IMG/VR virus record: IMGVR_UViG_3300050132_000038
Span: 1-64,000 of that record
DNA length: 64,000 nt
Strand: one strand, 5' to 3'
Shown here piece by piece: positions 14,134 to 52,776 of the stretch (the stretch's first letter is position 1; every line of letters begins with the position of its first letter). A program made the translations under genes and the position numbers. The notes beneath the pieces were generated by a model. It was not told the origin of the DNA and ran no database searches. It was given only the letters and a program-made list of their open reading frames with translations.

Positions 14134-14230
14134 TGCATCCTCTCTAGAGATTAAAAAGTGTTTGAGATGGAATTCCTTAACACAGATTAAAATTGAGGAT
14201 AGCGTGAAACTACAAGAAGTCGTAGACAAG

Positions 14231-15904: not shown

Positions 15905-16723
15905 CTATTCAGAACTAGCGAACTCATGTACCTCATCGGATAGAGCCTGCGCCCAGGCCGGGTCCTTCACTATAGAAACCTCGATCGGGCTGATGCCATG
16001 GGCATTTAAAAAGCTTAAATGGGAGTCACCATTCCAGTCCTTGTGGGTTTTCCAGTTCACATCCTTAATGCTAGAGATGTGCTGACAGCAATACTTAGAA
16101 GTACACTCTGTTCCGCAGTACCCACAAGTAAAGTAATCGACTAGTGCCCCCATAGAGTAGGTGTTGATCTCTTTGGTTAGTACCTTCTGTGCTACGTCAG
16201 GATACTTAGTCTTGTCGATAGCTAAGAGTCCCATCACCTTCCATAGCTTACCATCCCCGTAACCACTTACTTTATGGAAGCTAGCATCGAGGAGAACTCC
16301 GTAGGCCTTCTCGTGATCCTCGTTGTCGTGCTCAAGATGTACAGGGCAACCGGCCCATGCTTTGTAAGCCATACGGGATGTAGGTGGTGGCATGAACCTC
16401 GCTAGTTCCGAGGTCGGAAACGCAATACCGTTCCTATTAGGAAGCTCCGATGGACAGACTACTGTAGAGACGATTATGTAATCGGAAATATTCGGGCTTA
16501 TTTTATAGACTTTAGCCGCAAACGGTAGCCACGTCTCATAGTCCAGCTGAGTAAGGAGCGACTGATCCTTCTCTGCATCCATCACCTTCTCAGTGTGCCC
16601 GATGCTATCAACTACTTTGGTATTGAGAGCATCACCTAAACTAGTGTTAGCACTCAACCTCTTATAGACACCTGCGTCCTCTCGTTTAGCGGATGCCTCC
16701 GCGTATGCTTTTGGGATCCTCAT
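15905..16723 (-). CDS. Prohead maturation protease
   Basis: PNRNG..F, VHLEHDN (catalytic His candidate), YSMG (catalytic Ser candidate), CGYCG zinc ribbon, EVSIVKDPA; lies upstream of scaffold and capsid. Confidence 0.8.
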   Translation of the reverse strand: MRIPKAYAEASAKREDAGVYKRLSANTSLGDALNTKVVDSIGHTEKVMDAEKDQSLLTQLDYETWLPFAAKVYKISPNISDYIIVSTVVCPSELPNRNGIAFPTSELARFMPPPTSRMAYKAWAGCPVHLEHDNEDHEKAYGVLLDASFHKVSGYGDGKLWKVMGLLAIDKTKYPDVAQKVLTKEINTYSMGALVDYFTCGYCGTECTSKYCCQHISSIKDVNWKTHKDWNGDSHLSFLNAHGISPIEVSIVKDPAWAQALSDEVHEFASSE

Positions 16724-20900: not shown

Positions 20901-22493
20901 GGGTACCCAGCCCTTGGTTACACCCTGATCTGTAGCCGCTCTACGATTGGTTCTATCCTGTGCTTTGAGTACCTCAAAATCAGAGGAGTACTCAACCACC
21001 AGTATTAACCATGCCAAGTTCTCCATAACGTAGGACACCGAGTAACGAGCGTACACTGCGTCTAAGTTGGAGAGTACCGCACCCTTGATAGTCTTAAAGT
21101 AACGAGCAATAGGGCGGAAAGGACCATATCCAAGACGATCAGAGCTTATGTCCGCAAATGTAACAGGATGGCCTTCATCTTTCTCAAAGCGGCTAGCCCA
21201 GTAGGCGAACCACTGATCTAAGTTGTCTTCGACGCCCGCCTGTGGTAGATTCGCAAAACCCTCTACGTCTGAGGCAAGGACCTTAAAGGATGCAGGATGC
21301 ACGTTAGCAGGAACACCAAGTGCAGCGATACGTGCTATATTCTTGTCCGTGACAATACGTTCTTGTAGGAGCGCCCTTATGTGTGAGACGTCGGCTGCTT
21401 GATACCGAGTAAGGTCTTCTACCTCAAGAAAGCCTGAGGTGTTAGTATAGCTGTACTTGTTATTAACCCAGTCGATCAATACTGGAATGTTAGGCGGCAA
21501 CTTCTGTTTAACTTCTGAGCCAGCCTCCATAGCAGAAGCGCCCTCGTTAATATCTACGAGAGCATAACTGCCATCAGCGCGCGTCCCCGCCTGGGTATAG
21601 CGGTCTTCGTACTGAAGAGTTTGATTCAGTTCCTTAGGAAGATAGACAGGGCGCCCCTTAGGGGTAATAGAAATCCCGTCTTTGTTAATGCGTGCATATT
21701 GCGTATGAGACTTAGGCAGAGTAGCAGCGATCTTAGAGATAGGGAATGCTACAAAGGGGGCCAATCCTTCTGAACCGAAACCCGTCGTTACCCACTGCAA
21801 CAGCATAGGGTAAAGGTCAATATCACGCAACTCAATCCAGTGCGTGGAGGTCAGCTGCTGTGCTTCTTCCTTGGAAATCTTAAAGTCTGCGTAAATAACA
21901 GCCAACCCACCTTTAACCTTAACACGAATTCCTAGAAGACAGGCTTGCAATGCAACCTTAGCCCTAGCGTCTAAACCACTAATGCTCGAAATAACTCGGG
22001 AAGCAGGGATCTCTACGCTCATTGGAATAGTAGGATCACCTTCATCCTTCAAGCGTTGCTGCAACTCCGTCATGTTCTGATGATGCTCAGGAGTTGACTC
22101 AGGAATCTCCTTGGCAAACGCATAGCCCAATAAATTTTGTTCAAGCAACTGACTCAGGGGTCCTTGGCTATTCTTATTGAAAGCGAACAGTGGAACGGAT
22201 ACTCGAAAGTACGGATCAGCACCCATCACCTTCTTGATGGTCAGGTACCCAGCAGGCGTGGTGTCCATTACGAACTTGGTTGCCTTACGAATACCCTGTC
22301 GTACACTACCGAGGCGCTTATCATTGCCAATAGAAGGGAGCAGTGAGCATGCCCACAACTTGGTCATGAACAGGATTTCCGGGCCACTGTATAGTGCGCG
22401 GTAGATGTAGAAGAAGTTGCTCTGTAGCGCCTGCTTATCCAGCTGCAAACTCTCAGGGACAACTAGGTTGGTAGTTGGTCTCAACTCGGCCAT
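17916..22493 (-). CDS. Large SNF2/SWI2-family helicase/ATPase
   Basis: Walker A QAGGGKS, Walker B LDEAH, ASGT, KVLVF, EGLNFQ, WNPG..EQ..SRINR. Confidence 0.88.
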   Translation of the reverse strand: MAELRPTTNLVVPESLQLDKQALQSNFFYIYRALYSGPEILFMTKLWACSLLPSIGNDKRLGSVRQGIRKATKFVMDTTPAGYLTIKKVMGADPYFRVSVPLFAFNKNSQGPLSQLLEQNLLGYAFAKEIPESTPEHHQNMTELQQRLKDEGDPTIPMSVEIPASRVISSISGLDARAKVALQACLLGIRVKVKGGLAVIYADFKISKEEAQQLTSTHWIELRDIDLYPMLLQWVTTGFGSEGLAPFVAFPISKIAATLPKSHTQYARINKDGISITPKGRPVYLPKELNQTLQYEDRYTQAGTRADGSYALVDINEGASAMEAGSEVKQKLPPNIPVLIDWVNNKYSYTNTSGFLEVEDLTRYQAADVSHIRALLQERIVTDKNIARIAALGVPANVHPASFKVLASDVEGFANLPQAGVEDNLDQWFAYWASRFEKDEGHPVTFADISSDRLGYGPFRPIARYFKTIKGAVLSNLDAVYARYSVSYVMENLAWLILVVEYSSDFEVLKAQDRTNRRAATDQGVTKGWVPPSIPLLSPVVGMLPHQIKVRNLLKDSPDFAILPVQAGGGKSVIILTDVLYEIKANRSQPYLILCPGHLVANYVKEIVFFTGGKLNVIAINSYAFVQNGLPRLKAMLEKAPRNTVVVADYDVLKWRQRALCYGTTPTTIFPAIDFLRQFGFGYVALDEAHKVKNDTARTRATMSLITDIPKKRLASGTMAHDSPSDLAMQIATIDPTLFGTRDEFNLRYGAEVQGNRVIAWKPGAQQEIMRKIKSRIVVAGAMRKEWAALLPKKTEWIKGVNLTDAQYSVYNDILDGIIDRIKEDAKKNKALQKFVNPEAEGTDGEEGEDEVKDEDAGEDMANLLKPYLARLEQFMIAPASDILGDRVLKGADRVSPKAQLMVDRVKLHIDKGYPGKVLVFTNYVESAEELYRLAGPELQKMGILYKAGNKDVDGDRFEKDDRIKWMVGVEQSMNEGLNFQFASRLLRGENPWNPGTLEQGDSRINRPELKKIEGRAEIFYDYILANRSIDITKMSRLISKVIAVAKFENTDNPEYESIPDVPIIKMSLDNIQTMNDWEENLTEYNEAFGQYKGVRNDEYEAFKVAYRAAHNGEDPKLTPLTVAETPPDAKLMSRVPYPPGLDLYGTKEAGLVRLDQYLGKPEEADTGRDEEEDEPEVEEGEETPEQLRLKALYQSMKGKAVHTEFGDGILHSVGTGKRVPVDLFSGFTAMVRKSSVFVITRTESSTKDIRNELLKKIGDLPIDTPIDVPANIFKQSSRALKLAQERNKKVVIKKELKKHKELVESLNAQLQFTIVNGFLGISYFVNGEGDSVAKALQAIGFRPDPLFYCAKMPKALRLKRQLDLWQEKGFRPDPAILKSGAREGFAQLYNLLKAEKIKSHKDVYQLTTSAKLQNFYRMEHKPSNDSKMFKPYPLIEDGIAYIALPIQGQTASKAAIKVKALNVVWQTSAPTLSFFGSPQQLEAKIAQITEAGITVSTLMDLTKELKGLKKLSIRGSDKDKDLEV

Positions 22494-24575: not shown

Positions 24576-24892
24576 TATTTACCTCGGGCTCGCATTAGGT
24601 GAGTATGGCGTCGATTATGGCAGTCCTCACAAATGTGTAGGAGGTTACTTATTAGGTTCGCACCACCCTTTGAGAGCGGTACTATGTGGTGGCAGTCCTT
24701 AGCGGGAGCGTTACACCGCACACCATTAATACGCGCCTCGCACTTTCCTCCAGATCGCTTACGGACTGCAGCACTAATTTCCCACCAGCCCGCTTTTACC
24801 GACATACCGCTCTGGGTATTGTACGAGTCTCGCCTAATAGTAGCCACGCCGAACGCGTTTCTCTTAGCTGGTCTTGTCCGACGTGCCCACAT
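24575..24892 (-). CDS. HNH endonuclease
   Basis: C..C, DCHHIVPLSKGG..SNL..ICEDCHNRRH. Confidence 0.88.
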   Translation of the reverse strand: MWARRTRPAKRNAFGVATIRRDSYNTQSGMSVKAGWWEISAAVRKRSGGKCEARINGVRCNAPAKDCHHIVPLSKGGANLISNLLHICEDCHNRRHTHLMRARGK

Positions 24893-26510: not shown

Positions 26511-28037
26511 TCAGAATAGCTGACCGTAGCCTCTGCCGTATCTACCCCACATGGTAACAGGAGAGATCGTAATACCCACTGCACCGATAGCGCCGTGCTG
26601 TAGCATAGTCGGATCGGTGGAGCCATCGCCCCCCATCACCCCACGCATTACCAAGTTCTGCTTCAACGCCTTCAGCTCATTGTCCAACCTCGACTGAATC
26701 TTAGAGATAGCAGCATCGAACCCTGCTGTACGATCAATGTCCAAGGTAATAGCAGCACCCTGGAACTGGAATGCCTTCTCTGCTTCTGCCGTTACCTGCG
26801 ATTCCAGAGCAAACATCTCAGCGTGCATCAACCAGTATTCACGGATGACCCCTAAGGCATTGGTGAAGCTGAAGTTGGTGAATACCCCGTACGCACCGTT
26901 GAAAGCATCCGCACCCCGACGCAACCAAGTCATGATCGTTTGGTTAGGGTACAGCATGTCAGGAGTACCATACAGCGTAGTGTTCGCCTTGTTGATCTTC
27001 GACCGTACATCAGTAATAGCTGTCATCATAGATGCATTGATAACGAACAGGTCTGCTGATTCCTGGTAGACGAGCGAGGCTTGTGACGAATACCAATACT
27101 TCCAGATCACAGTGTAGGGGACAAGGGATACCATCAACTGCTGGGTGTCGATGACCCCTGCGTAGTACCAACCATTAGCAGTACGTTCTGAGTTACCAAT
27201 AAGGGACGGGGCTGCTACCTGTACACCGCCAGCCCACAATTCGACGGTGACGTTATCGTACAGCTGATCTAGTACAATCGATAGGTTAGCAGGGCTGCCT
27301 TGCAGTTCAACTGTAGACTGCGTGCCCAAAGGTACCGTATTCAACCCTACTACACGGATGTTCTCGTAGGAGAAGAAAGCATTCTGCGATACCTGACCTT
27401 GCAGTGGATCATTTTGCAGGTTCTGTACCTGCGGGAGTTCTAACGTATATCGAAGTTGATACCGTTGGTTATCTAAGCTAGGTGGTACTGTAGAGGGCAC
27501 TGTGATAACTGCGTTAGCTAGGACTGTGTTAGCCAAACCGTTCGACTGTACCAAATAGTTGTAGGCGTTACCTGCTGCGTACACTGTGCCGTCTGAGGCT
27601 AAGAGTTCCCAGGTTACAAAGCCTCCACGTGGGTCAATAGTAGCAGGGAAGCTAAAGATAGCAGTACCAATTGCTGCCATGCCTGCTTGGATTTCATCAA
27701 CCAGGTCGGTGAACGCCTGCGGATTCTGTGTGGCGTACGGTACAAATAATTCATCCTGAACTGTGACTGCTACCTGAGCTGTGAGCACCCGAGCATTAGT
27801 AGTAGCCAGAATCTGGAAGCCGTAAGCAGTACCAGCAATACCACCGGATAACAGGATCTGCGTTACAGGATTAGCACCTGACTGCAAGACTGCTGTGAGC
27901 GGTGGAGCAGTAGTCGGTGTTACCGCAGTCAATACTATGCTGGTGATCGTTTCACCTGGAGCAAGCATAGACGTTAGGTTTGGTGCGACTAATGTATTCT
28001 CTGTGGGCTGTGCAAAATAGACGAATGTATTGTTCAT
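26511..28037 (-). CDS. Putative virion head/neck structural protein
   Basis: Beta-rich N-terminal domains plus a helical C-terminal domain reminiscent of head-tail adaptors; in the late block. Confidence 0.5.
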   Translation of the reverse strand: MNNTFVYFAQPTENTLVAPNLTSMLAPGETITSIVLTAVTPTTAPPLTAVLQSGANPVTQILLSGGIAGTAYGFQILATTNARVLTAQVAVTVQDELFVPYATQNPQAFTDLVDEIQAGMAAIGTAIFSFPATIDPRGGFVTWELLASDGTVYAAGNAYNYLVQSNGLANTVLANAVITVPSTVPPSLDNQRYQLRYTLELPQVQNLQNDPLQGQVSQNAFFSYENIRVVGLNTVPLGTQSTVELQGSPANLSIVLDQLYDNVTVELWAGGVQVAAPSLIGNSERTANGWYYAGVIDTQQLMVSLVPYTVIWKYWYSSQASLVYQESADLFVINASMMTAITDVRSKINKANTTLYGTPDMLYPNQTIMTWLRRGADAFNGAYGVFTNFSFTNALGVIREYWLMHAEMFALESQVTAEAEKAFQFQGAAITLDIDRTAGFDAAISKIQSRLDNELKALKQNLVMRGVMGGDGSTDPTMLQHGAIGAVGITISPVTMWGRYGRGYGQLF

Positions 28038-28567
28038 GCTTTCACCTTAAAGTAAAAATTCCCTCTAAGTTTATTTATAGGTTTACCTTTTACAATAGGT
28101 ATTGTATCGGTACCCCAAGAGAAATCCACAGGTACCTGAAGATGATCTAGTAGTTCCACTGAATAGTACTTAGATACGGATCTCCAGGTTCTAACTGCCA
28201 TTATACCTATAATGCTTGAACTTTGAAGTTCACCTAGAACATGAATAGCTGCTAGATATAGTACAAGACCTAAATGTCGTCCCCTGTATTCTTCTTCGAT
28301 AAAAACACTGATAACCATGTTGCCTTTGGCCGTCGTAGACAATATTCCAATTATTCTATCTCTATCTTTTAAGAAAAAGTCACGAGAATAAGTCAACTTC
28401 AGGTAGTATAAGGACAAACCTTCTTTTGTGCCAAGTGGTACAGCAGGCTTAGTTTTCAATCGTTTTTCAAGAAACTCTACGTCTCGATCAAATTCTAGTT
28501 GAGTGTAGTTCTCTCGCATCCTAATAGGCATAGACTCTACGAGCCTAGAGGCTGCATTTAATTGCAT
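28034..28567 (-). CDS. GNAT-family acetyltransferase with LNAAxRL tag
   Basis: MQLNAASRLVES; acetyl-CoA motif VFIEEEYRGRHLG..LY; visibly more AT-rich than its neighbours. Confidence 0.72.
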   Translation of the reverse strand: MQLNAASRLVESMPIRMRENYTQLEFDRDVEFLEKRLKTKPAVPLGTKEGLSLYYLKLTYSRDFFLKDRDRIIGILSTTAKGNMVISVFIEEEYRGRHLGLVLYLAAIHVLGELQSSSIIGIMAVRTWRSVSKYYSVELLDHLQVPVDFSWGTDTIPIVKGKPINKLRGNFYFKVKA

Positions 28568-28659
28568 GTCGTTTCACCTGGAGCAAGCATAGGCGTTAGG
28601 TTCGGAGCTACTAATGTGTTTTCTGTTGGCTGTGCGAAGTAGACAAATGTGTTGTTCAT
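28558..28659 (-). pseudogene. Truncated duplicate of the first 30 codons of 26511..28037
   Basis: Translates MNNTFVYFAQPTENTLVAPNLTPMLAPGETTCN*; 28570..28659 vs 27948..28037 differ at 11 of 90 nt. Confidence 0.88.
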
Positions 28660-29378
28660 TTTTCAATTCCCTTCAGGTACTCTGAAACCTTAAGAGGGGT
28701 ATTAGTCTCTGAGACTACGGCTAGTATGTTGTCTCTGCTAACGTGGGACACACCTGGCCCCTGAACCACTACCTCTTTCTGATCGTGGGAAAATGGATCA
28801 TCCAGGACAGTACGTATGAACTTTTTATCTATATAGAACAGAGCTGACGGTGGCGTATGAATAGCTAATATAATTCCGATCTGTTCTAAAGGTGTATCCC
28901 AGGTGACGTTGGCGTACTTCAATGCAACTTTAGGATCTGAGGTCCAGGATGAAAGAACAGCGGGCTCTACTTTCAACGGCTTGCCGTTTAGGATCTTTGT
29001 CAGCGCGGTCTCAGGGATAAGCAACCCTCGATACACTACCTTCGGTAGTGTACTACGGTAGCTTTCTCTAACGACGTGGAAAGCTTTTAGGGCATCCTGC
29101 ATTTGCGCGGAGGTGAATCTACCAGAACCGCCACTTATCCACTGCTGTATAGTATGTGAAACCCATTCAGGGAGGGGTTCAGCTGCAGCTAACAGCCTGT
29201 GTGCGGCGTTCAGCTTGACGCCTGATACTCCTATAGATGGCTGAACTAACGTGTTGTTAATGCCGTTACCCCAGATGTCAGGATCGCCAATTGATAGTTC
29301 CCCATCTGCTATTGGGGCAGTCTCACCTGTTCTGTGCCTAGGTGCGTGCATTGCTTTTGTCTCTTTCATATTAGCCAT
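28656..29378 (-). CDS. ADP-ribosyltransferase-like protein (R-S-E clade) with internal tag
   Basis: VVYRGL, LSSWTSD and DQKEVVV match the R/STS/QxE arrangement; VKLNAAHRLLAA precedes the domain. Confidence 0.65.
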   Translation of the reverse strand: MANMKETKAMHAPRHRTGETAPIADGELSIGDPDIWGNGINNTLVQPSIGVSGVKLNAAHRLLAAAEPLPEWVSHTIQQWISGGSGRFTSAQMQDALKAFHVVRESYRSTLPKVVYRGLLIPETALTKILNGKPLKVEPAVLSSWTSDPKVALKYANVTWDTPLEQIGIILAIHTPPSALFYIDKKFIRTVLDDPFSHDQKEVVVQGPGVSHVSRDNILAVVSETNTPLKVSEYLKGIEK

Positions 29379-29704
29379 AGTACAGACCTTCCTGGCGCTG
29401 TCGTCAGTAGGCGGATAGTCTGTCCCTTCTGTTTCAATTGAACTGTAGTGCCCGCACAGTACATACCACCGTTGACCTGCCGAGGTTCATCTGAGATCCA
29501 TCGAGCTAACGCCAAGGCCATGACGATACGGGGGCTTTCCTCGTACACTAGCAGGGAATTATTTGCGTCATCTGGTGACTCCGCTTCGATACCATAGTTC
29601 GCTAGTAGTTCAATCAGGTGGGTACTCAACATGGCTTGCTCCTCTATAAGGGACGCTACTAGTCGGTGTGCAGCTTTCATATTAATCTCTCTAGTGTTAG
29701 CCAC
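29366..29704 (-). CDS. Hypothetical protein with tag variant
   Basis: EINMKAAHRLVAS near the N-terminus. Confidence 0.6.
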   Translation of the reverse strand: MANTREINMKAAHRLVASLIEEQAMLSTHLIELLANYGIEAESPDDANNSLLVYEESPRIVMALALARWISDEPRQVNGGMYCAGTTVQLKQKGQTIRLLTTAPGRSVLWLI

Positions 29705-29710
29705 TATGCG

Positions 29711-29980
29711 TTAGCCTCGGTCGGTTATGCGAGCCTTGTTACCCTCTTTGGCTACGTGGCACTTGTGCTCACCTTTACTAAACTCACCGGAGCCTGTTGA
29801 CGTCCACCCATCGCTTTTCAACTTGGAGACTACCTCAGAGAGTGTGGCGTCTACCGTGACATAGTTAGCACCCTCTGGGCGATCGTAGGTGAACTGGAGG
29901 CTGTTGATCCAGCCTTCAAAAGGGTCAGCGTGGACCTCGTACATAGAAAGTAATCGAGAAGCAGCATTGAGTTTAAACAT
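29711..29980 (-). CDS. Small protein with LNAAxRL tag
   Basis: MFKLNAASRLLS. Confidence 0.68.
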   Translation of the reverse strand: MFKLNAASRLLSMYEVHADPFEGWINSLQFTYDRPEGANYVTVDATLSEVVSKLKSDGWTSTGSGEFSKGEHKCHVAKEGNKARITDRG

Positions 29981-30021
29981 AGGGAATCCTTAGTAAGTTT
30001 TCAATGCTGCTAAGTATCATG

Positions 30022-31419
30022 CTAGAGCCACAGCTTCTCTTTACCTGTCGGCTGCTCAGCTTTGGTTTCAGGAGCTTCGGAAGGCTTACTTTCTTCTCCG
30101 ATGCCACTGTTCAGAATCAAAAGAACTTTTCGGAGTTGGGCGTTATTTAATCCAAACTTCTGGCCTAGGAATTCAGCATCGTGCACTGAGACCTCTCTAC
30201 CCTTCGCTACGTTGGTCACTGTGAATTCAATTTGCGTGCTAGAGGGCTTCATTCGAATCTTAGCAGTGCGTGAGCTCTTAAACAACCCCTTTACTTCCTG
30301 GTACAGGGCATACGCAACTTCCTTGGCTTGCTCAGGCTCAACACCTTTACGCAGCTTGAACACTAGCTTATCTTCATCTACATCCAGCTTCTGAATGAAA
30401 TCCTTGTAGCTAAACATCTCTGGCTTCAACTCGTTCAGGGGTTTCCGCAGTTGCGTGGACAACGGCACAGTACCGAGCGAGGAGCTGAAGTCTTCTAGAG
30501 CTAAGAGATCAGAGATAGCTTTAACTGCCTCGCCTGCTGAGCCAACCGATTCACCTCCCTCTTTCAGCAGTTGACCCGGGAGTTCGTACTCTGGGTTAAT
30601 CTGAATCGTAGTAGACTCACCAACAACCCATTGCACTGAGATGTACAGGCTAGGCGTTACCTTACCTTCATCGTTAGTAGCGTTAATCAGCATCAGGTAG
30701 TAGGTGAAAACGATCTGGCCTTCAGCAGAAGTCGATACGTAGAGGAACAGATTGGAGTCCTCAAACATAACGTGCTCTTGCACTTCCTGACGAATAACGT
30801 CGATGTACTTCTCGAAGGTCTTCGGCACATGCTTGGCTGCCACTTCATTTAGGAAGCCTAAGACCGTTTTCAACTGCTTAGCAACCTTACCTTTCAACTC
30901 ATGGAGTGCAGCTATAGTAGCTGTATACGCTTCACCACGACGATCCGGGAACTGCATAGAGAGTTGAGCTTCCACTGCTTCTAGGGTACGATGTTTCTCG
31001 TATAGGTCCTCAGAGAGAGAGTACTGCTCTTCCAGCTTCTTAACGTTAGGGACCACCACCTTAGTAAGTTCTGGATCAATCTTACGCTTGAGTCGTGATT
31101 TATTTGACCCACCTTCACCTTCTTTGATGGTGAGTTCCATCTCAGCAGCCTTAACTAGAGTAGCACCAACCCACTCCTTTGGCTTCTTTAGGAAGGCCAA
31201 CTGAGTTTGGTGTACCTTAATAACCTTCTCGTTCTCGTCGATCTCTTCCTTCATAGTATCTAGGAAGCGAGTGACGTCATCGATGTAACGAAACTTCGGT
31301 AGTTCGATCGCGTGGACACGAGTTCGGGCTACTGTTTTGTTCTTAGCTGTTGCTGACTTCTTCGTGGCAGTAATACCCGAGGAAGCGCGGAGGCGAGCGG
31401 CTGCATTAGTCTTGACCAT
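30022..31419 (-). CDS. Putative virion protein with tag variant
   Basis: MVKTNAAARLRAS; preceded by a CAATTTAAT motif. Confidence 0.65.
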   Translation of the reverse strand: MVKTNAAARLRASSGITATKKSATAKNKTVARTRVHAIELPKFRYIDDVTRFLDTMKEEIDENEKVIKVHQTQLAFLKKPKEWVGATLVKAAEMELTIKEGEGGSNKSRLKRKIDPELTKVVVPNVKKLEEQYSLSEDLYEKHRTLEAVEAQLSMQFPDRRGEAYTATIAALHELKGKVAKQLKTVLGFLNEVAAKHVPKTFEKYIDVIRQEVQEHVMFEDSNLFLYVSTSAEGQIVFTYYLMLINATNDEGKVTPSLYISVQWVVGESTTIQINPEYELPGQLLKEGGESVGSAGEAVKAISDLLALEDFSSSLGTVPLSTQLRKPLNELKPEMFSYKDFIQKLDVDEDKLVFKLRKGVEPEQAKEVAYALYQEVKGLFKSSRTAKIRMKPSSTQIEFTVTNVAKGREVSVHDAEFLGQKFGLNNAQLRKVLLILNSGIGEESKPSEAPETKAEQPTGKEKLWL

Positions 31420-31480
31420 TATTATTCCTTACGAATTCGAGATCTGAATAAGATTAAATTGTATTCTAGTATGTTCGGTA

Positions 31481-32710
31481 CTACGTTCTGTACTTGCCGG
31501 TAACGTTATCCCTCGAGTTCAGTGTAGTCCTGTCCTTAGACATGATACGACCACGAGGAGGCAGTATTCTATATAGCTCCTGCGGCTGTATTACTCGCAC
31601 CTGAACTTCCCAACCTAGGATTGAACGTTGCCGAGACTTCCACGTATTGACTGATTGTACGACCAGGACTTTACCAAGCTGTGACTCCACGATAATATCC
31701 TGGGAGTTAATAGTAGGTACATTAGGACTCAATACAATCTGGAAGGGTTCCATCTGTTCCAGCAACGATATATCGGTTCCTATGTTACGTTTCGGGAATT
31801 CAAAATACACCGACTCAGTAGTGAGTGCGAATTGAATCTCTAGGTGGGAGAACTCCCCATTAACATTGGCAGTTAGTAAGTGAGGACCTCCGTCACACAA
31901 GGCTAGTACCTGTGTAGGATTCGTAATGGGAGTTCCATCGATGCTAAAGGTAGCAGGAACCGCCTTCGCCATATTCCACACCTTGAATACATCTATCCCT
32001 ATAGCACCACGAGGAAACTTCACAATGACCGAGAAGTTTTGCGCCTTAGCGGTAAGTGGCTTCCTCGTTACGTTGATCTCGCCTTCTTGGGATAACTTAA
32101 CGTCCGTAACGGTGAGGACTGTACGGTGCGCGTGGAATGGGGCAAACCCACCAATGAATCCAGTGCCAAAACAAATGGGACACGCTACATCCGAGAAGCC
32201 GAGAACAGATGCATCGAAGTCACCTACTAGATCATCTATGGTGGTCGAGTTAAGAGGGCCGTTATCCTCGAAGTCGATACCTTCTGTGATGACCTCGAAG
32301 GGGAAGTCACCGCCTTCTCCAGTGCTACCAAGTGAGAATTGCCCTTGGTTTGGGTCGGTAGAGAACGGCGAAGTCTCAGTGATGTTATTTGGGAATTGTC
32401 GATTAGGCTGCTCGTACGGAGTGATCGTAAACTCCATAGCGCCAGTCAACATCGAGTTAATATCACCTTGGGATGCCTTACCATCTTTGCCGAGGATACC
32501 GTTGATCTGTTTACCAGATGCTTGGCAGCTACACTTACGACCTTGGAGCAAACGGTTGTAGTGGCAGCAGGAAATTCCCTGGGCTCTGAAGGCATTGTAC
32601 GTCTTGTTCTGCTGGATAGCCATCACCTCGGTGATAGCCTTCTCAGCTACATCGGCACCACGAGCATTGGGAGGTAGAAGACGATTATTCGTACTATTCT
32701 TGTACGGCAA
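31481..32710 (-). CDS. Putative head-closure/neck protein with Zn-finger
   Basis: GRKCSC and CPICFGTGFIGG motifs; C-terminal beta domain; assignment by recollected resemblance to jumbo phage neck proteins. Confidence 0.45.
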   Translation of the reverse strand: MPYKNSTNNRLLPPNARGADVAEKAITEVMAIQQNKTYNAFRAQGISCCHYNRLLQGRKCSCQASGKQINGILGKDGKASQGDINSMLTGAMEFTITPYEQPNRQFPNNITETSPFSTDPNQGQFSLGSTGEGGDFPFEVITEGIDFEDNGPLNSTTIDDLVGDFDASVLGFSDVACPICFGTGFIGGFAPFHAHRTVLTVTDVKLSQEGEINVTRKPLTAKAQNFSVIVKFPRGAIGIDVFKVWNMAKAVPATFSIDGTPITNPTQVLALCDGGPHLLTANVNGEFSHLEIQFALTTESVYFEFPKRNIGTDISLLEQMEPFQIVLSPNVPTINSQDIIVESQLGKVLVVQSVNTWKSRQRSILGWEVQVRVIQPQELYRILPPRGRIMSKDRTTLNSRDNVTGKYRT

Positions 32711-32774
32711 TTTGGGTGCCTCCAGATCAACTATTTTAATTATTATAAAATTGACCTGGAGTTGAAGGAGGGAC

Positions 32775-33119
32775 TTAGTTTACGGCTAGAGCGGGGAATT
32801 GCTTCTGGACTTGCTGTGCAAAGCACTCTATGGTAGCGCACACGGTATTGAGGCTAAAGTATTGGGACTTGAACTCACCGTTACGAAGTCTCACATCTAC
32901 TTGCACCTCACCGGAAGTAGCGATCTTCACAAACTTAGTTCGTTTCCTGTTCTGTGCAGTGAGGGAAGCATCGTAGTAAACAAACTCTACTCCAGGTGCT
33001 TTGTCAAGGGTGATCAACCGTTCTTTGAGTGAGTTCCAGAACATATCTTTCATAAACGTTGTTACGTGGCGATCCCATTTACCGAGAGCGCAGTCCTGCA
33101 TAGTACCAGATACAAGCAT
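32775..33119 (-). CDS. Hypothetical protein
   Basis: ORF with GGAG RBS, preceded by TGTAAATA. Confidence 0.55.
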   Translation of the reverse strand: MLVSGTMQDCALGKWDRHVTTFMKDMFWNSLKERLITLDKAPGVEFVYYDASLTAQNRKRTKFVKIATSGEVQVDVRLRNGEFKSQYFSLNTVCATIECFAQQVQKQFPALAVN

Positions 33120-33170
33120 CTAAATCTCCGTAAGGCTAAAAGTTGTTATGTTTCAACCACTATTTACAGT

Positions 33171-33740
33171 CTAATCAAAGTGGGTAAGTCTGTACGCCGC
33201 GCTCATCTTCAGAGGGTCGACGCCATTCTTCTTCGCGTTTTCTATTCTGGAGATTTCCATCTCAACTGAGCGCATCGACTGTGGATCAGCTAGCAATGAT
33301 TCTAGCCCAGGGTGTAGGGGATCAGGCCACTCATTATACGGCACCCATACGTTACCTGCGGTTTCCTCAGCGAATTCAGGTGGAGAATTAATCTCGAATT
33401 GCTTAGGAATGACTACGAGATTGTTAGCGTACTGAAATCCGCGGTCTGCATCATAGTACGTCATGAGAGGGAATATCTTCATCTCACCTGTGTATCCTGT
33501 TTCCTCTCTAAGTTCCCGTTTGAGTGCGGTGAACGTTTCCTCGTTACCGTCGATAGAACCTCCCCAACAACCGTACGTGTTTGGCGTATCCGAAGTAGTG
33601 CTACGGAGTTGGAAACTGAAGTTCAGTGTGTCTGCAGCTAGGAGTAGGCAACCAACCGCGTAGTGGTACCCCCTCACCCCAGGGACCCATTCTTCACCAT
33701 CTTTGTGTGCTAGTAGTCGTGTAGCTGCATTTAGTTTCAT
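33171..33740 (-). CDS. Nudix hydrolase with tags at both ends
   Basis: Nudix box GGSIDGNEETFTALKRELREETG; starts MKLNAATRLLA, ends LKMSAAYRLTHFD. Confidence 0.88.
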   Translation of the reverse strand: MKLNAATRLLAHKDGEEWVPGVRGYHYAVGCLLLAADTLNFSFQLRSTTSDTPNTYGCWGGSIDGNEETFTALKRELREETGYTGEMKIFPLMTYYDADRGFQYANNLVVIPKQFEINSPPEFAEETAGNVWVPYNEWPDPLHPGLESLLADPQSMRSVEMEISRIENAKKNGVDPLKMSAAYRLTHFD

Positions 33741-33749
33741 TGTCAGGTC

Positions 33750-34373
33750 CTAAGAAGTCGGGTCCACTATGACAACCTGCCTTCCGCGCATCATGAAGTT
33801 GTCCTTGTGGATGTCCGGGTAGCCATCACCAGTGTTGTACTCAGCTACAAGCCACTCGGCGAATTGTTTTAGATTCGGATCTAAGGGTGCGCCACGCGAA
33901 GTCTTTATCTCACATAGGCGGGTCCACAGCGGACTAACCTTAGACTGGTATACCGAGAGGTTTTTCTGGTGCGGTACAAAGCATATAGTCTCCAGTCCAT
34001 AGATGAACTTCTTGAACTGGGCTTCTGACATAGGAGTCAGTTTCTCCATGAAGACCACGTGAAGTCCTGTCTTATCTGAGTTCCAAATGTGGCCTTTGTA
34101 CTTCGGATCAGGATCCAGACCGTGTTCGTCGTGGTGCTCGCCCTTGATCTTCAATAGATACGGATTGTGGGGATTAGCCTGACAGAACTTCGTATACGAT
34201 TCGAACGCAGGGTCGTGAGTGAACACCTTCACCATCGTCGTCGGATCTGTTAGATGCTGAAAGACAAAGGCGTGAGAGCCCTTTGCTACAGGCTCTATAC
34301 CTTGTGACTTCAAGTCCTTCAGATACTCTGTCAAGGTGACTGCGATTAACCTAGTAGCTGCGTTTAACTTCAT
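33750..34373 (-). CDS. Protein-kinase-like (PKL fold) enzyme with LNAAxRL tag
   Basis: Gly-loop AKGSHAFVF, VKV lysine, FMEKL hinge, DIHKDNFM catalytic loop, IVDP. Confidence 0.78.
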   Translation of the reverse strand: MKLNAATRLIAVTLTEYLKDLKSQGIEPVAKGSHAFVFQHLTDPTTMVKVFTHDPAFESYTKFCQANPHNPYLLKIKGEHHDEHGLDPDPKYKGHIWNSDKTGLHVVFMEKLTPMSEAQFKKFIYGLETICFVPHQKNLSVYQSKVSPLWTRLCEIKTSRGAPLDPNLKQFAEWLVAEYNTGDGYPDIHKDNFMMRGRQVVIVDPTS

Positions 34374-34376
34374 TTT

Positions 34377-35792
34377 CTATTTCCCTACTAAAAAGTTTGT
34401 GAAAGCCCATTCGTTATCTTCATCGAAATCCTTCTTGTACAGGTGCCCTCTGTTATCCAAGGGACTCCAATCTGAATAGTAAGCCACCATAGGACCAAGG
34501 TAGGGTTTAGCTATTGACAGCACAAAGTCGAAGGGTAAGTCTTCTGGCTCACAATAACCCATTCTCGGATTCTCTAACGTCCATACTATAGCCCCTAGCA
34601 GTGAGGCACATACCTGCACAGTAGTTGCATTCTGACCAGGAACTAACGATCGAGCTTCCTCTATATCTAATTGAGAGCCATACCACAGCGCATTCTTACC
34701 ATGACCTAGGAGCAACACCCCTAGTTCATCGATACCACTTAGTATGGAGTTCTTAGCAATCCTAGTATTACGGTGCATCCACAATTCTTGTCCACGCATC
34801 TCATGGATTGAGGCCAATGCTGCATCTGTCGGCTGATACGCATAGTACACTGTAGGTCTATAGGAATCAGTGGATAGATACTCACTGATCGTTACTGCCT
34901 CTGAGTGCTGGATTAGGAATCCGTTATACGTACCACCAAGAGGCACCCAGGACTTCACGAGGGTGGCTACTCCGGGAGTGTCGAGATACGCTGAATTCCC
35001 CTGCACAGTTAAGCCACCAACCTCTTGCGGTTCGTGCGACCCCCAACCTAGTTCAGCAGGTGCTCTACCCTCAGCCCAGAAGCCTTCGCAGCTCCAGGTG
35101 TTAACGAATTCATGTACGCGCTTAGGAACCTTCAGTATCTGTGTATCGCGTTCTGCTATTTGAATCACCTTAGTATCAGTGGCCTCGGCTAGAGCTGCCC
35201 AACCCATTTGGTTCTGTGGAACCTCAGTAGATAATCCGGTATCCTTAGCAATCTTGAGTAATGCAGCTTTTGTGAAATGCGATACTAGCCCAGGGTTAGC
35301 CCCGTGCGTTACTACACAGGTAGCATGACCTGGGTACTTGGAAGCCATCTCCCTAATCTCTTGATGCTCTGTGTACAAAGTACGTTCTGCTAGATCGGGT
35401 ATTGTCTCGTCGGGTGAGGTAGCCCAACGCTCAATGGACGTGTCGATGTACATAACGTTATGGGATAGGCACCACTCTACAATAGCTATTCCATCGATGT
35501 TCAAGCTTAGGTTGACGAGGTAATCACCTTCAGCTAGTAAGGACTCAAGAGTAGAGCCCATGTTGTCTTCTACTATCTCACGCACTACGTAGTGAATGCC
35601 TGTGTAGGGAGCGAATTCAGGGCGCTCTACCTTATCCAAAACAGTTATCTTGGAGGGATTCAGATCTATGTGGCGGAGGAGCATTGGTAACATCGTCTGC
35701 CCTACAGCACCAAAGCCCAAGAGTAAGAGGCGACCATCGTGTGTTGCTAACTTTTGACTAGCTAGTAGTCTGGAGGCTGCGTTAATCTTCAT
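34377..35792 (-). CDS. hss: Homospermidine synthase with N-terminal tag
   Basis: GFGAVG Rossmann motif, HGANPGLVSHF, QIAERDTQ, FVNTWSCEGF, HSEA, YRPTVYYAY, GIDELGVLL, QNATTVQV. Confidence 0.93.
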   Translation of the reverse strand: MKINAASRLLASQKLATHDGRLLLLGFGAVGQTMLPMLLRHIDLNPSKITVLDKVERPEFAPYTGIHYVVREIVEDNMGSTLESLLAEGDYLVNLSLNIDGIAIVEWCLSHNVMYIDTSIERWATSPDETIPDLAERTLYTEHQEIREMASKYPGHATCVVTHGANPGLVSHFTKAALLKIAKDTGLSTEVPQNQMGWAALAEATDTKVIQIAERDTQILKVPKRVHEFVNTWSCEGFWAEGRAPAELGWGSHEPQEVGGLTVQGNSAYLDTPGVATLVKSWVPLGGTYNGFLIQHSEAVTISEYLSTDSYRPTVYYAYQPTDAALASIHEMRGQELWMHRNTRIAKNSILSGIDELGVLLLGHGKNALWYGSQLDIEEARSLVPGQNATTVQVCASLLGAIVWTLENPRMGYCEPEDLPFDFVLSIAKPYLGPMVAYYSDWSPLDNRGHLYKKDFDEDNEWAFTNFLVGK

Positions 35793-35878
35793 CTCGTAGC
35801 TCTCATTGAAAATGGTAGAATCAATGAGGCTAGGTGGGCTGTACTTCTACCCGGTGTACGGCCCACGTTCAGGCTAGA

Positions 35879-36031
35879 TTACTCGTCGCCTTGTTCCTGC
35901 TCTTGTCCAGGTTGCTCCTGTTCCTGCTCCTGACCATTCTCCTCAGGTTCACCTGGACCTTGTTGCTGTTGCTGGTTCTGCTCTTGAGTCGTACTCTGAC
36001 TCACGTTTTGACTTACATTAACCTTAGTCAT
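35879..36031 (-). CDS. Short Gln/Glu-rich low-complexity peptide
   Basis: ATG 36031 with GAGG RBS; QEQ/QQQ repeats. Confidence 0.45.
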   Translation of the reverse strand: MTKVNVSQNVSQSTTQEQNQQQQQGPGEPEENGQEQEQEQPGQEQEQGDE

Positions 36032-36094
36032 GACTGCCTCACATTTGAAGTTAGGTGGGGTTAGCACCGGATTCAATACAGCTAGTCAGTGCTA

Positions 36095-36307
36095 CTACTT
36101 ACCCAGTAAGCGACGGGCCGCGCTAACCTCTACGTCATCCAAGACAGAGGCGTCCCTCCGGTTTTGGTAAATGTAGTTAGTCAAAGCCCACTTGTTATCA
36201 GGATGCGATTTCTCAGCGTCCTTCTTAGACTTCTCCCAGTCCTTCTCCAATTTCTTCTTAGTACCACGCCCTTCACGGACATCTTTATTGATTAATGCGT
36301 TAGGCAC
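36095..36307 (-). CDS. Small basic protein with C-terminal tag variant
   Basis: Ends VEVSAARRLLGK; AGGAG RBS. Confidence 0.6.
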   Translation of the reverse strand: MPNALINKDVREGRGTKKKLEKDWEKSKKDAEKSHPDNKWALTNYIYQNRRDASVLDDVEVSAARRLLGK

Positions 36308-36344
36308 TTTGATTCTCCTAGTAGCTGAAAATCAATACTGCTAG

Positions 36345-36848
36345 TTATACACGTTTAAGTTGGTGAACACTGAATACTCCGTAGGTAGGAATATCGTCGT
36401 TCACTCCTTCCTTGCCTTCTACAGAGTTAAACCCAGCAGCCTTGAGGATCCTAACTAGCTCAGGTAGTTGCATGTACCACTCCCACACATGCTTATAACC
36501 GGAACCCTTTACCTCTGCTAGTTCGTCCATGAGCTCCATACCCTTTTCTCTAGTGATGTGACCCTCCTGGAATTGCGAGAGTATGCCACGCTTCACCCGA
36601 TCGGTTACATCCTTCAGCTGAACTTCCGTTTGTAGCGTTCGGAAACCAAAGTCGAAGCTATGCCCTATGTCAGCATGAAATTCTAGTACGTGCTGTTCAT
36701 CCTTTGCATACTCTAAGGCGTAGTCTCGATCAGGAGTAATGAAGATGATGTGCTGGTTCTTTGCGTGTTCATCCGACCAGGTTTGAGTTAGGCCTCGGTA
36801 GAAGATTTGACTAGCTAGTAGCCTGTGTGCTGCGTTTAGTTTCATCAT
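36345..36848 (-). CDS. ADP-ribosyltransferase-like protein with LNAAxRL tag
   Basis: MMKLNAAHRLLAS; FYRG..IFITPDRDYALEYA..GFNSV..YGVF..QLK resembles phage ART-like domains. Confidence 0.5.
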   Translation of the reverse strand: MMKLNAAHRLLASQIFYRGLTQTWSDEHAKNQHIIFITPDRDYALEYAKDEQHVLEFHADIGHSFDFGFRTLQTEVQLKDVTDRVKRGILSQFQEGHITREKGMELMDELAEVKGSGYKHVWEWYMQLPELVRILKAAGFNSVEGKEGVNDDIPTYGVFSVHQLKRV

Positions 36849-37780
36849 ACTTCTTCCTTTAGAGCTTTGCTCACTACAGCATCCTCTAATCCTTGCCCTA
36901 TGGATTCTACAAAGTGGCGGAGAACGCTGCCCTCCGGAACTTTCCTTTTACGAATGGCGTTGAGCGCGCTAGTTAAAGCTAGGCTGCCAGCACCAGCAAC
37001 AAGGTGTGCGGCAAACCCACCAGGTAGTGCCGCTATACTCATGCCTAATGCCATCTTCCCTAGGCCCTTGATTGCTTTCTTCTGCTCAGCACTCAACTCT
37101 GTACCCTCACTCAGTGCTACAAGTCCTGTGGTGGCCTGCTTTACCCTAGGGAAGGACCGGTCTAGTACCTTAGCTATGTGTGAGGCCTTAGACTTAATGT
37201 GCTGAGCAATGGCACCCTTCTTAGGTGGTGTCGATACCTCTTCATCAGGTACATCGGCTTTCTCTATACCCTCGGCCACGGAGTCCACGAACACTTCGAG
37301 GTCGTCCTTACCATTGGAATTCTCTTTGTTCTTTTTGAAGTGTTCCGTAGCGTATTTCACTGCGTGAACACCTACGTGACCAGCAGTATGAATAAGGTGT
37401 GCCTGTTCCTTACCTACTGCGAACTTCAATGCTGATTTCAGGACTGTATCCCCGAGCTCCATGAGAACATCCCGATGGTCCTCAGTTAGCTTCTTCCCTG
37501 TGGCAAGATGCTTTAGGGCTGCGGTAGCTCCGGATAACAGTGGGAATGAATCTCGGAGTAGCCTCGCTATCTTAGGGCCGTGGGTTCTTAGGACACCTGC
37601 AGACGCCTTACGGGGCTCAGGTGTATCCTTAGCCTCGGGTTCTTTCGAGTCTTCCTTTATGGAATCCTTAGCATACTTGGAGCCTGGATGATCCTTGATG
37701 TATTGCTTCTTCTGGTCGGCATCAAGAGCTTCCCACCAATCCTCCGAAGCTAACAGTCGATGCGCCGCGTTTAGTTTCAT
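36845..37780 (-). CDS. Tagged protein, paralog A (internal duplication, Gly/Ala-rich hydrophobic segment)
   Basis: MKLNAAHRLLAS; WWEALDADQKKQYIKDHPGSKYA; paralogous to 37777..38808. Confidence 0.72.
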   Translation of the reverse strand: MKLNAAHRLLASEDWWEALDADQKKQYIKDHPGSKYAKDSIKEDSKEPEAKDTPEPRKASAGVLRTHGPKIARLLRDSFPLLSGATAALKHLATGKKLTEDHRDVLMELGDTVLKSALKFAVGKEQAHLIHTAGHVGVHAVKYATEHFKKNKENSNGKDDLEVFVDSVAEGIEKADVPDEEVSTPPKKGAIAQHIKSKASHIAKVLDRSFPRVKQATTGLVALSEGTELSAEQKKAIKGLGKMALGMSIAALPGGFAAHLVAGAGSLALTSALNAIRKRKVPEGSVLRHFVESIGQGLEDAVVSKALKEEV

Positions 37781-38808
37781 CCTTCCCCCTCACCACCAGC
37801 AGTGTGCTCAAGCAAGGCATCTTCCAAGCCTTCGCCAATCGACTCTACGAAGTGGTGGATGATGTGTCCATCTTTGAACTTACCACTCTGTATTAGTTTG
37901 AATGCGTGGGTGATTGCTACTGAGCCAACCCCTGCTGCTAAGTGGGCAGCCAGTCCACCAGGTAGTGCGGCGATACTTAAGCCCAAAGTAATCTTACCCA
38001 GGCTCTTCATTGCGGTTTTCTGTTCATCCGAAAGCTTCTGTCCTTCGCTTAGGGCAACCAAACCTTGGGTAGCAGGCTTGATATGCTGGAAGGACTTATC
38101 CAGCACCTGTGTAATGTGGTGTGCTTTACTCCTGATGTGCCGACCGATAGCAGAACGGTAGCTACTCTTAGGTGCAGCATGCTCTTTAGGAACCGGGGCT
38201 TCCTTAGCTTGCTCTACACCATCGGCTAAAGCCTCGACGAAGACCTCAACGTCATCCTTACCCTCGGACTGTTCCTTCTTCTCTTTGAAGTGTTCCACTG
38301 CGTGGTTAACTGCGGTAATACCAATACGGCCGAGTACCTGAGCACCATGAACACCAACAACAGAGCTAAGAGTAGCTTTGAGGGCTACACCACCGAGGTC
38401 GTATAGTGCTTCCTTGTGGTTTTCCTCTAGGGCCTTACCGGTGGCTAAATGCTTTAGGGCTGAGGTAGCTTCATGGATTAGCGGAAATGTCTTCTTAAGG
38501 AAGCTGGCAATCTTAGGGGCATGTTTACGAATGCCACCTGCAATCTTCTTACGGTGCTCTGGATTAATCTGCGACTTAGCCGCAGGCTCTGTACCCAACT
38601 CCTCTTCATCCTTCTTGGATTTCGATTCCTCGTTAGAGCCCTCTCGAATAGCGTCCTCTGCGTACTTCGAGTGGGGGTGTTCCTCTATGTACTCCTTCTT
38701 CTGGTCGGGCTCTAGATGTTGCCACCACTCACTGGCTGCTGGAGCCTTTGCCTGAGTAATAGTGGATGCTACCAATCGTGCTGCTGCGTTTAGTTTGAAT
38801 TGTTTCAT
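37777..38808 (-). CDS. Tagged protein, paralog B
   Basis: FKLNAAARLVAS; WWQHLEPDQKKEYIEEHPHSKYA; shares SIAALPGG.AAHL.AG and HFVESIG.GLEDA with paralog A. Confidence 0.72.
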   Translation of the reverse strand: MKQFKLNAAARLVASTITQAKAPAASEWWQHLEPDQKKEYIEEHPHSKYAEDAIREGSNEESKSKKDEEELGTEPAAKSQINPEHRKKIAGGIRKHAPKIASFLKKTFPLIHEATSALKHLATGKALEENHKEALYDLGGVALKATLSSVVGVHGAQVLGRIGITAVNHAVEHFKEKKEQSEGKDDVEVFVEALADGVEQAKEAPVPKEHAAPKSSYRSAIGRHIRSKAHHITQVLDKSFQHIKPATQGLVALSEGQKLSDEQKTAMKSLGKITLGLSIAALPGGLAAHLAAGVGSVAITHAFKLIQSGKFKDGHIIHHFVESIGEGLEDALLEHTAGGEGEG

Positions 38809-40472: not shown

Positions 40473-40523
40473 TCTATTGTTCCTAAAGAAGCGATGTTTA
40501 GAATGAAATTGCGGGCGTAACGC

Positions 40524-40561
40524 AAAAGAGGGCACGTATTCCGCTAAGAATACGTGCCCTC
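40524..40561 (-). terminator. Intrinsic terminator separating the early/middle block from the late block
   Basis: GAGGGCACGTATTC / GAATACGTGCCCTC 14-bp stem followed by TTTT. Confidence 0.82.
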
Positions 40562-52576: not shown

Positions 52577-52776
52577 TTCACTCCGTACTTTGCCGCGAAA
52601 TTGGCAACGCGCCGCCAGAAGATGTGTTTGTAGGTCGGTGTATGTACGTCGTTCATAGCCACCCGTGCTACGCTATTAACTCGCCTACGCCGGGAGGGCC
52701 CTTTCAGCCGTTCTCGTTTTAAGGCCACGCGCTTGGAGCCAAGACTACCTCGCCGAAAATAAAATAGTGTCATCAT
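52573..52776 (-). CDS. Small Arg-rich protein
   Basis: ATGA-coupled on both sides; ends KYGVK like the ligase. Confidence 0.5.
   Translation of the reverse strand: MMTLFYFRRGSLGSKRVALKRERLKGPSRRRRVNSVARVAMNDVHTPTYKHIFWRRVANFAAKYGVK

Follow-up and report, generated by a model that had tools for sequence, protein, structure and literature searches.

Tagged genes in the head module of a jumbo phage

The first 64,000 nucleotides of the IMG/VR virus record IMGVR_UViG_3300050132_000038 (hereafter, the window) contain an island of genes, at 28.0–38.8 kb, whose products carry a common short peptide. The window is the start of a complete virus record of 218,861 bp with direct terminal repeats. An earlier sequence-only reading had proposed that the tagged proteins form a pre-made takeover or anti-defense cocktail of modifying enzymes that acts before phage genes are expressed. 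Nearly all genes of the region lie on the minus strand, and the candidate cargo open reading frames (ORFs) were all recovered there, at the positions given in Table 1. Twelve tagged ORFs fall within the island. Half of them encode recognizable enzymes, namely two ADP-ribosyltransferases (ARTs; here ART1 and ART2), a T7-type protein kinase, an acetyltransferase, a Nudix hydrolase, and a homospermidine synthase (HSS). The tagged genes sit within the head and neck module, between the genes for the head–tail connector and topoisomerase IB, and close to those for the prohead protease and the major head protein.

The major head protein shares 71–75% identity with its counterparts in Ralstonia phage phiRSL1 and Burkholderia phages BcepSauron, BcepSaruman, and BCSR5, and 60% identity with that of Achromobacter phage Motura. 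The prohead protease points to the same relatives, with 67–73% identity to the RSL1 and BcepSauron proteases. Because of these identities, the phage is classed, from its proteins, as an RSL1/Sarumanvirus-type jumbo myovirus and as kin of phiRSL1 and BcepSauron. The DNA of the island gave no match in a megablast search of 50,697 phage records; relatives were recovered through proteins only.

A short peptide is shared by unrelated proteins

The strict form of the peptide motif, [LIT][NQ]A[AS]xRL (core LNAAxRL), occurs in 19 of 343 ORFs and, in 17 of these, lies within the first 20 residues. When the proteome was shuffled 200 times, the strict motif was found 0.07 times on average and never more than once. 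A looser pattern retrieves about 24 ORFs genome-wide. The column profile covers some 12 residues and reads M-K-[IL]-(Q)-L-N-A-A-x-R-L-[LV]-[AE]-[ST]. The arginine of the tag is written with CGG, CGA, AGG, CGT, CGC, and AGA, and its leucines with six codons. This free variation of the arginine and leucine codons places the selection at the level of the peptide, as opposed to the RNA. A Sec or lipoprotein signal would be longer and less polar than this peptide, whose sequence also contains no twin arginine. In AlphaFold models of ART1 and ART2, it forms a short, low-confidence helix (residues 4–11) that is detached from the domain.

Nineteen of the roughly 24 tagged ORFs lie either at 3.4–38.8 kb or at the opposite genome end (216–218 kb), which is contiguous with the window through the terminal repeat. 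A few, at 87.7, 164.9, and 184 kb, are remote from the structural module. Tag-like motifs also occur internally and at C-termini. In three proteins, all encoded on the minus strand, such a motif forms the extreme C-terminus (23834–24304, 36095–36307, and the Nudix hydrolase, where the motif occupies 33171–33206). The RSL1 homologues ORF125 and ORF112 extend about 95–100 amino acids past the tag-like motif, and judged by this alignment, the genes whose RSL1 homologues are ORF112 and ORF125 look truncated at a probable cleavage site.

Table 1. Features of the head module, the tagged island, and the flanking genes discussed in the text
Feature	Position	Strand	Length (amino acids)	Evidence and details
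Tail sheath	7038-8975			PHROG/Pfam
Major head protein	10682..11770	-		phrog_2522, E 1.6e-91
SprT-like metallopeptidase-domain protein, head module	14268..15896	-		PF10263, E 7.2e-12
Prohead (head maturation) protease	15905..16723	-		phrog_18299, E 5.9e-90
SNF2-type helicase, head module	17916..22493	-	1525	phrog_62 and phrog_21391, ~E 1e-95; SNF2-rel_dom, E 1.2e-17
Head–tail connector	26511-28037			PHROG/Pfam
GNAT-fold acetyltransferase candidate, tagged	28034..28567	-	177	N-terminal tag; motif A-like YRGRHLG at residues 94-100 (nt 28268-28288)
ART1, tagged	28656..29378	-	240	54-residue leader; internal tag at residues 55-65 (nt 29184-29216); R-S-E domain with YRG 116-118, SSWT 143-146, QKE 200-202
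Small protein, tagged	29366..29680	-		likely start ATG 29680, giving MKAAHRLVAS
89-residue protein, tagged	29711..29980	-	89
465-residue protein, tagged	30022..31419	-	465	tagged 37-residue extension, absent from the orthologues in L006, L016, and RSL1 (ORF116)
Nudix hydrolase, tagged	33171..33740	-	189	Nudix box at residues 61-83 (nt 33492-33560); second tag-like motif at C-terminus
T7 gp0.7-type protein kinase core, tagged	33750..34373	-	207	catalytic loop PDIHKDNF at residues 186-193
HSS/saccharopine dehydrogenase family, tagged	34377..35792	-	471	Pfam, E 2.6e-23 and 9.3e-23
70-residue ORF	36095..36307	-	70	ends 3 residues after tag-like motif; homologous to N-terminal part of RSL1 ORF112
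ART2, tagged	36345..36848	-	167	tag followed immediately by ART-PolyVal/AcrIF11-like domain; invariant Y17-R18-G19, H33, T38, Y43, Y47, E147
Two paralogues, tagged	36845..38808	-	311 and 343	conserved WW..L....QKK.Y.K.HP.SKYA directly after tag
Topoisomerase IB	38811-40535			PHROG/Pfam
NAMPT, untagged	47480-48880	-
NMNAT-Nudix, untagged	48952-50058	-
NAD-dependent DNA ligase	52773..54713	-		~2.7 kb from the NAD salvage pair, same gene block

Two ADP-ribosyltransferases of different families

Searches of Pfam, PHROG, NCBIfam, and the PDB sequences found no match to ART1. An exhaustive HMMER search collected 19 representatives of its family. In an alignment of 16 sequences, a tryptophan, R117 (of Y-R-G), S144-W145 (of S-S-W-T), E202, and G207 are invariant. 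The R-S-E triad is therefore intact, while the glutamine of the Q-x-E motif varies within the family. None of the 16 family members matches the Pfam ART models (PF03496 and PF01129), and a profile of the family retrieved nothing from the PDB sequences. Because of this lack of membership, ART1 is regarded as a distinct, mostly viral ART family that has no Pfam model. The alignment-based AlphaFold model (pLDDT 91) has an ART fold, and its structural neighbors in the ESM Atlas are of the Vis/ADPrib_exo_Tox type. The top 30 Swiss-Prot fold matches do not include T4 Alt.

ART1 is unusual in that its tag begins at residue 55, behind a leader of 54 residues. The possibility that translation starts at the tag was considered and rejected: the tag is preceded by GTC, a codon that does not initiate translation, and the leader is conserved. 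The leader recurs in P0002, in the metagenomic P0016, and in RSL1 ORF117, with a conserved N-x-[LIV]-V-Q-P-[ST]-I-x-V-x-G directly before the tag.

ART2 was more readily placed: of the two ARTs, it alone can be assigned to a named family. BLASTP identified nine full-length homologues (38–82% identity), all with the N-terminal tag. When ART2 and these homologues were compared singly with PF18760 (ART-PolyVal), 4 of the 10 matched, with a best E value of 2.2e-5; the most distant homologue (P0012; 38% identity, E 3e-35) carries the PF18760 domain. Neither ART2 itself nor a six-frame translation of the genome matched PF18760. ART2 thus appears to belong to ART-PolyVal by transitive homology, since its homologues, and not ART2 itself, match the model. 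The AlphaFold model (pLDDT 88) has a diphtheria toxin/PARP-like ART fold. The nearest solved fold is that of AcrIF11 (6kyf), followed by diphtheria toxin and the PARPs. In BFVD, 26 viral proteins were matched at E ≤ 1e-3, and many of these are polyvalent proteins of 1,000–1,500 amino acids or are named ART-PolyVal. The structural neighbors include a capsid protease–MuF fusion and a pre-ejectosome chain. The fold-match scores of both ARTs are moderate. The sequence-only reading had seen ART motifs in both proteins, more weakly in ART2; both folds hold, and at the level of family assignment the ranking is reversed.

Nudix hydrolase, kinase, and acetyltransferase

In the Nudix hydrolase, the expression GX5EX7REUXEEXGU matches exactly at residues 61–83, Pfam PF00293 scores 36.3 bits against a gathering threshold of 21.1 (E 6.6e-9), and phrog_1198 matches with E 1.3e-20. 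NCBIfam offered no equivalog or specific Nudix subfamily for this protein and nothing for the other enzymes. The tag of the Nudix protein is kept in all four lineages examined (this phage, RSL1 ORF109, BcepSauron gp099, and L016).

The kinase matches phrog_15752 (T7 gp0.7-type; E 3.4e-6) over residues 21–207. Its tagged orthologue in a metagenomic relative (L006; ENA ERZ27310941 k141_145316) is 32% identical (E 2.8e-24) and carries a precomputed assignment to PF27024, Phage_T7_kinase, that is marked weak. When the two were aligned with T7 gp0.7 (NC_001604), G32 of the glycine-rich loop, the ATP-binding lysine K49, the catalytic-loop residues D187-x-H189-x-x-N192, and the metal-binding D204 of the "DP" motif were invariant, and the motifs were colinear with those of gp0.7. 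The protein ends three residues after the metal-binding aspartate and, from this, is read as a bare kinase core. A tblastn search of phage isolates found no relatives of the kinase.

For the acetyltransferase candidate, the ESM Atlas model (pTM 0.82) has a viral GNAT as its nearest structural cluster (TM 0.71), and the best ten named feature neighbors in the Atlas are all GNATs (features 0.94). YRGRHLGLV (residues 94–102) resembles the acetyl-CoA-binding motif A (R/Q-x-x-G-x-G/A) only approximately. In L006, four tagged proteins match GNAT models, and three of them exceed the Acetyltransf_1 cut-off. PDB sequence searches with ART1, ART2, the kinase, and the GNAT candidate returned nothing meaningful, and a set of 5.8 billion proteins yielded only one or two relatives each for ART1 and the GNAT candidate.

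Profiles, alignments, structural neighbors, and models together support the folds or catalytic motifs of the five modifying enzymes named in the sequence-only reading. The Nudix and kinase motifs stand as described, and acetylation stands as a fold. ART1 departs from that description in that its tag is internal.

The island varies between relatives

The island is syntenic with RSL1 ORF108–118 (topoisomerase IB, Nudix, HSS, and so on to the connector). Its gene content differs, and it is variable between relatives. The tag itself has dialects. RSL1 uses looser A-[AV]-x-R-L forms, and BcepSauron has A-A-x-R-L at N- or C-termini. In L006, M-K-I-E-A-A-x-R-L-x-A is found on at least 12 ORFs, including the kinase, ART2, and four GNAT-like proteins. 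The equivalent island of L006 (47495–68001) further contains a patatin-like phospholipase without the tag, a BubE-domain protein, and DUF3175 proteins; the four tagged GNAT-like proteins, which are paralogues, lie there too.

HSS shares 62% identity with RSL1 ORF110, which is untagged and for which a functional homospermidine synthase has been reported (PMC9992855). Both HSS and the 465-residue protein are tagged here and have untagged orthologues in RSL1 or metagenomic relatives, and alignment of these suggests that the tag was gained in a recent recruitment. RSL1 ORF117 (L002:7286–7996) combines the ART1 leader and tag with a different C-terminal domain that has no Pfam match. Compared with ART1, it looks like a cassette exchange, in which the domain was swapped behind a constant leader.

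In distant Erwinia jumbo phages, the ART2 homologue aligns from residue 10 onward. The homologue in Erwinia phage Alexandra (L008; NC_047995, 160711–173193) does not have the LNAAxRL tag, and its neighbors share another recurrent N-terminal peptide, M-A-L-I-K-I-[NS]-L..A-V.S.S-A. From these sequences, the Erwinia jumbo-phage group may use a different address label.

NAD salvage and other neighboring genes

The sequence-only reading had further suggested that genes for salvage of nicotinamide adenine dinucleotide (NAD) feed the ARTs. The NAMPT and NMNAT-Nudix genes are real, and neither is tagged. An NAD-dependent DNA ligase is encoded in the same gene block, so the link to the ARTs is without specific support; the ligase is an alternative consumer of salvaged NAD and a simple reason for a phage to salvage it. 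NAMPT/NMNAT-type pairs also rebuild NAD against NAD-depleting defenses. Feeding the ARTs is possible, as one among several readings of the salvage pair.

Several other genes of the window deserve mention. In the stretch 11800–12510, the minus strand encodes a homologue of RSL1 ORF135, a virion structural protein. The neighboring gene (12562–14229) has a highly acidic, repetitive product that may be a scaffold. An HNH endonuclease gene (24575–24892, minus strand; 61% identity to RSL1 ORF122) lies inside the head module. Beside the tail genes, a 324-residue protein (1918–2892, minus strand) combines FAD_binding_5 (E 1.7e-40) and CO_deh_flav_C (E 1.7e-16) domains; these are of the flavoprotein-subunit type of molybdopterin dehydrogenases and are unusual in a phage. 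An SPFH/Band_7 protein is encoded at 42700–43545 (minus strand). Between the 70-residue tag-bearing ORF and HSS is a putative 65-residue ORF (35879–36076, minus strand), mostly of Q/E-rich low complexity, whose coding status is uncertain.

Discussion

By analogy with the capsid-targeting sequence (CTS) of phage T4, we think it somewhat probable that the shared peptide marks cargo for loading into the head and injection with the DNA, and that the enzymes act in the next host. The peptide would dock each protein into the core of the assembling prohead, as the T4 CTS does. The prohead protease, the presumed processing enzyme, would then remove it, with the cleavage site suggested by the recurring L-x-[A/E] and then [S/T] after Arg-Leu. 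The idea of a cleavage signal arises because the internal and C-terminal copies of the motif fit it and because the [A/E]-[S/T] pattern resembles T4-type prohead protease sites. The mature enzymes would remain in the head and exit with the DNA. In the next cell, host proteins would be ADP-ribosylated, phosphorylated, and acetylated, and a nucleotide-diphosphate compound hydrolyzed, before or independently of phage transcription. A defense protein is a plausible target of ART2, since its nearest characterized relative, AcrIF11, inactivates a CRISPR surveillance complex.

The takeover cocktail of the sequence-only reading is supported in part by the folds, the reality of the tag, the location in the head module, the presence of tagged enzyme classes in relatives, and the match to the polyvalent-protein repertoire; its NAD-salvage component stays one reading among several. 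The island carries stand-alone versions, apparently catalytically intact by their motifs, of domains that are fused into polyvalent proteins elsewhere.

Several observations weigh against head loading and injection of an enzyme cocktail. About 18 of the roughly 24 tagged proteins have no recognizable function, so the description of the cargo as "dominated" by modification enzymes applies to an annotatable minority. Enzymes are recognizable in 6 of 12 tagged proteins in the island and 6 of about 24 genome-wide, and for the other tagged ORFs, five of which lie outside the window, Pfam assigned no family. One of the six, HSS, is a biosynthetic enzyme and a poor fit to a host-takeover cocktail. 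The GNAT candidate scores 17.2 bits with Pfam Acetyltransf_1 (E 0.0065), below the cut-off of 20.7, in its acetyl-CoA-binding region; we accept the GNAT fold from the models, but its activity is less certain, the support being at the level of the fold. In sequence, the tag does not resemble the T4 CTS, and a literature search for a virion proteome or for propeptide data on RSL1, BcepSauron, or Matilda found none. Finally, a predicted complex of the prohead protease, major head protein, and ART2 scored 0.00, which is evidence neither way on binding.

Other explanations accept part of this scheme. In one, the peptide does direct proteins to the prohead or mark them for the protease, but the enzymes serve the phage in the producing cell or the prohead, by modifying head-core proteins or DNA, or by providing polyamine for DNA condensation. 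A polyamine biosynthetic enzyme, HSS, is indeed tagged, which leaves room for a role of some tagged proteins in the virion itself; the internal and C-terminal motif copies are reminiscent of scaffold-type cleavage sites, and the genes are found among those for morphogenesis. We consider this explanation unlikely, in view of the fact that ARTs of the ART-PolyVal/AcrIF11 type, T7-type kinases, and GNATs are known or predicted host-directed effectors (PMC5512222; bioRxiv 10.1101/2024.08.26.609590), and that variability of the island among relatives is expected of arms-race cargo and not of conserved assembly functions. In another, the proteins are catalytically dead internal head proteins, in part or as a whole, that retain only the fold of an enzyme. 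The sub-threshold score of the GNAT candidate, the absence of a Pfam family and the variable Q-x-E glutamine of ART1, and the moderate fold scores could all be read in this way. We regard it as very improbable: the Nudix box is perfect, the kinase retains its lysine, catalytic Asp and Asn, and metal-binding Asp, the R, S, and E of ART1 are invariant, and so are the H, Y, and E of ART2 across homologues of 38–84% identity.

A further proposal detaches the peptide from the capsid altogether and makes it a signal for localization, stability, or co-regulation (for example, for membrane association or as a degron) on late proteins, with the enzymes being ordinary, expressed takeover proteins. T7 gp0.7 and AcrIF11, the closest characterized relatives of two of the enzymes, do act as expressed proteins, and a few tagged ORFs are distant from the structural module. 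The fact that 19 of the roughly 24 tagged ORFs cluster in the head/tail block or at the adjoining genome end, the unsuitability of the peptide as a Sec, lipoprotein, or twin-arginine signal, and the resemblance of the [A/E]-[S/T] pattern after Leu to T4-type prohead protease sites make this proposal, in our estimate, distinctly unlikely.

If the peptide does direct proteins into the head, the island would be modular: a protein would become cargo by gaining the peptide, and effector domains would be swapped behind a constant leader. We put forward, more tentatively and as something short of probable, a wider view in which RSL1-like jumbo phages operate an open "address-label" system. Acquiring the peptide of about 12 residues, at either end or behind a constant leader, would turn any protein into head cargo; effector domains would be shuffled as in polymorphic toxin cassettes; and the outcome would be a lineage-specific, fast-evolving injected arsenal of post-translational modifiers, an unbundled counterpart of the polyvalent proteins. 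Among these modifiers would be an AcrIF11-like ART, the ART family that has no Pfam model, a T7-type kinase, and several GNATs.

To our knowledge, very few packaged enzymes have been characterized outside T4 Alt and the N4 and phiKZ polymerases. If the tag loads heads, five or more distinct activities that modify proteins or nucleotides would be injected together by this lineage, and the cultured relatives RSL1 and BcepSauron could reveal how a phage acts on its host in the first seconds of infection. ART1, from a family without a Pfam model, and ART2, a predicted packaged AcrIF11-like enzyme, would be candidate anti-defense effectors. The tag would also be a portable peptide for loading foreign proteins into jumbo-phage heads and for protein delivery. 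The arrangement ties the computational "polyvalent protein" hypothesis to a simpler and genetically tractable one.

Comparison with known systems

Individual enzymes of the island differ from their best-known relatives. The kinase and T7 gp0.7 share colinear N-lobe, catalytic-loop, and DP motifs and no canonical C-lobe, but the kinase is tagged and does not have the C-terminal transcription shut-off domain of gp0.7. T7 gp0.7, one of two precedents named in the sequence-only reading, is an early expressed protein and is not packaged. ART1 shares the fold, the R, an S-x-S/T-like motif, and Q-x-E with R-S-E mono-ADP-ribosyltransferases of the Vis/C3/SpvB type and has no profile membership among them. 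AcrIF11 ADP-ribosylates the Csy complex (bioRxiv 10.1101/2024.08.26.609590); the resemblance of ART2 to it (6kyf) is limited to fold and features (~10% identity), and AcrIF11 is expressed and has no capsid tag.

The other precedent, T4 Alt, is sound, as is the T4 CTS. A stretch of ten N-terminal residues is enough to bring IPIII or foreign proteins into the T4 prohead core and is afterward cut off by gp21; from Alt, itself an ART, propeptides are removed at both ends (PMC9026906). The present system is like that of T4 Alt and IPI–III in that a short N-terminal peptide is common to unrelated proteins, the genes are in or near the head module, a prohead protease is nearby, and one cargo class is an ART. 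The motifs at both ends of the Nudix protein parallel Alt. It is unlike the T4 system in its peptide (core LNAAxRL versus the MKTYQEFIAE type), in the number of tagged proteins (about 24 versus about 4), and in their range, which includes a kinase, a GNAT, a Nudix hydrolase, HSS, and a second ART clade. Some tags here lie behind a leader of 54–70 amino acids, and others at the C-terminus. ART1 shows no particular likeness to Alt, and for the tagged proteins of this phage, packaging and cleavage are predictions.

The ejection proteins of phiKZ and SPN3US, the Dar proteins of P1, and the MuF-toxin fusions offer further parallels, as they are either head-internal proteins that are cut by a T4 gp21-like protease and ejected, or effectors fused to head proteins. 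They belong to another lineage, their cleavage logo is A/S/G-x-E, and their cargo is mostly non-enzymatic or RNA polymerase.

The polyvalent proteins of phages and conjugative elements, with their set of ART, kinase, GNAT, SprT-like peptidase, and SNF2 helicase domains, are predicted to travel in the particle and to modify host proteins after injection (Iyer, Burroughs, Anand, de Souza, and Aravind, 2017; PMC5512222). The same repertoire is encoded here, including ART-PolyVal itself, a Ser/Thr kinase, a GNAT, a Zn-metallopeptidase, and an SNF2 helicase. Here, it is distributed over separate small genes, each with its own peptide, as opposed to one giant multidomain polypeptide, and the kinase is of the T7 gp0.7 type and not of the truncated kinase clade. 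By these analogies, the system would work like T4 CTS/Alt and the polyvalent proteins, yet it is a member of neither, because the tag has another sequence, the set of cargo is much larger and richer in enzymes, and the domains are unbundled.

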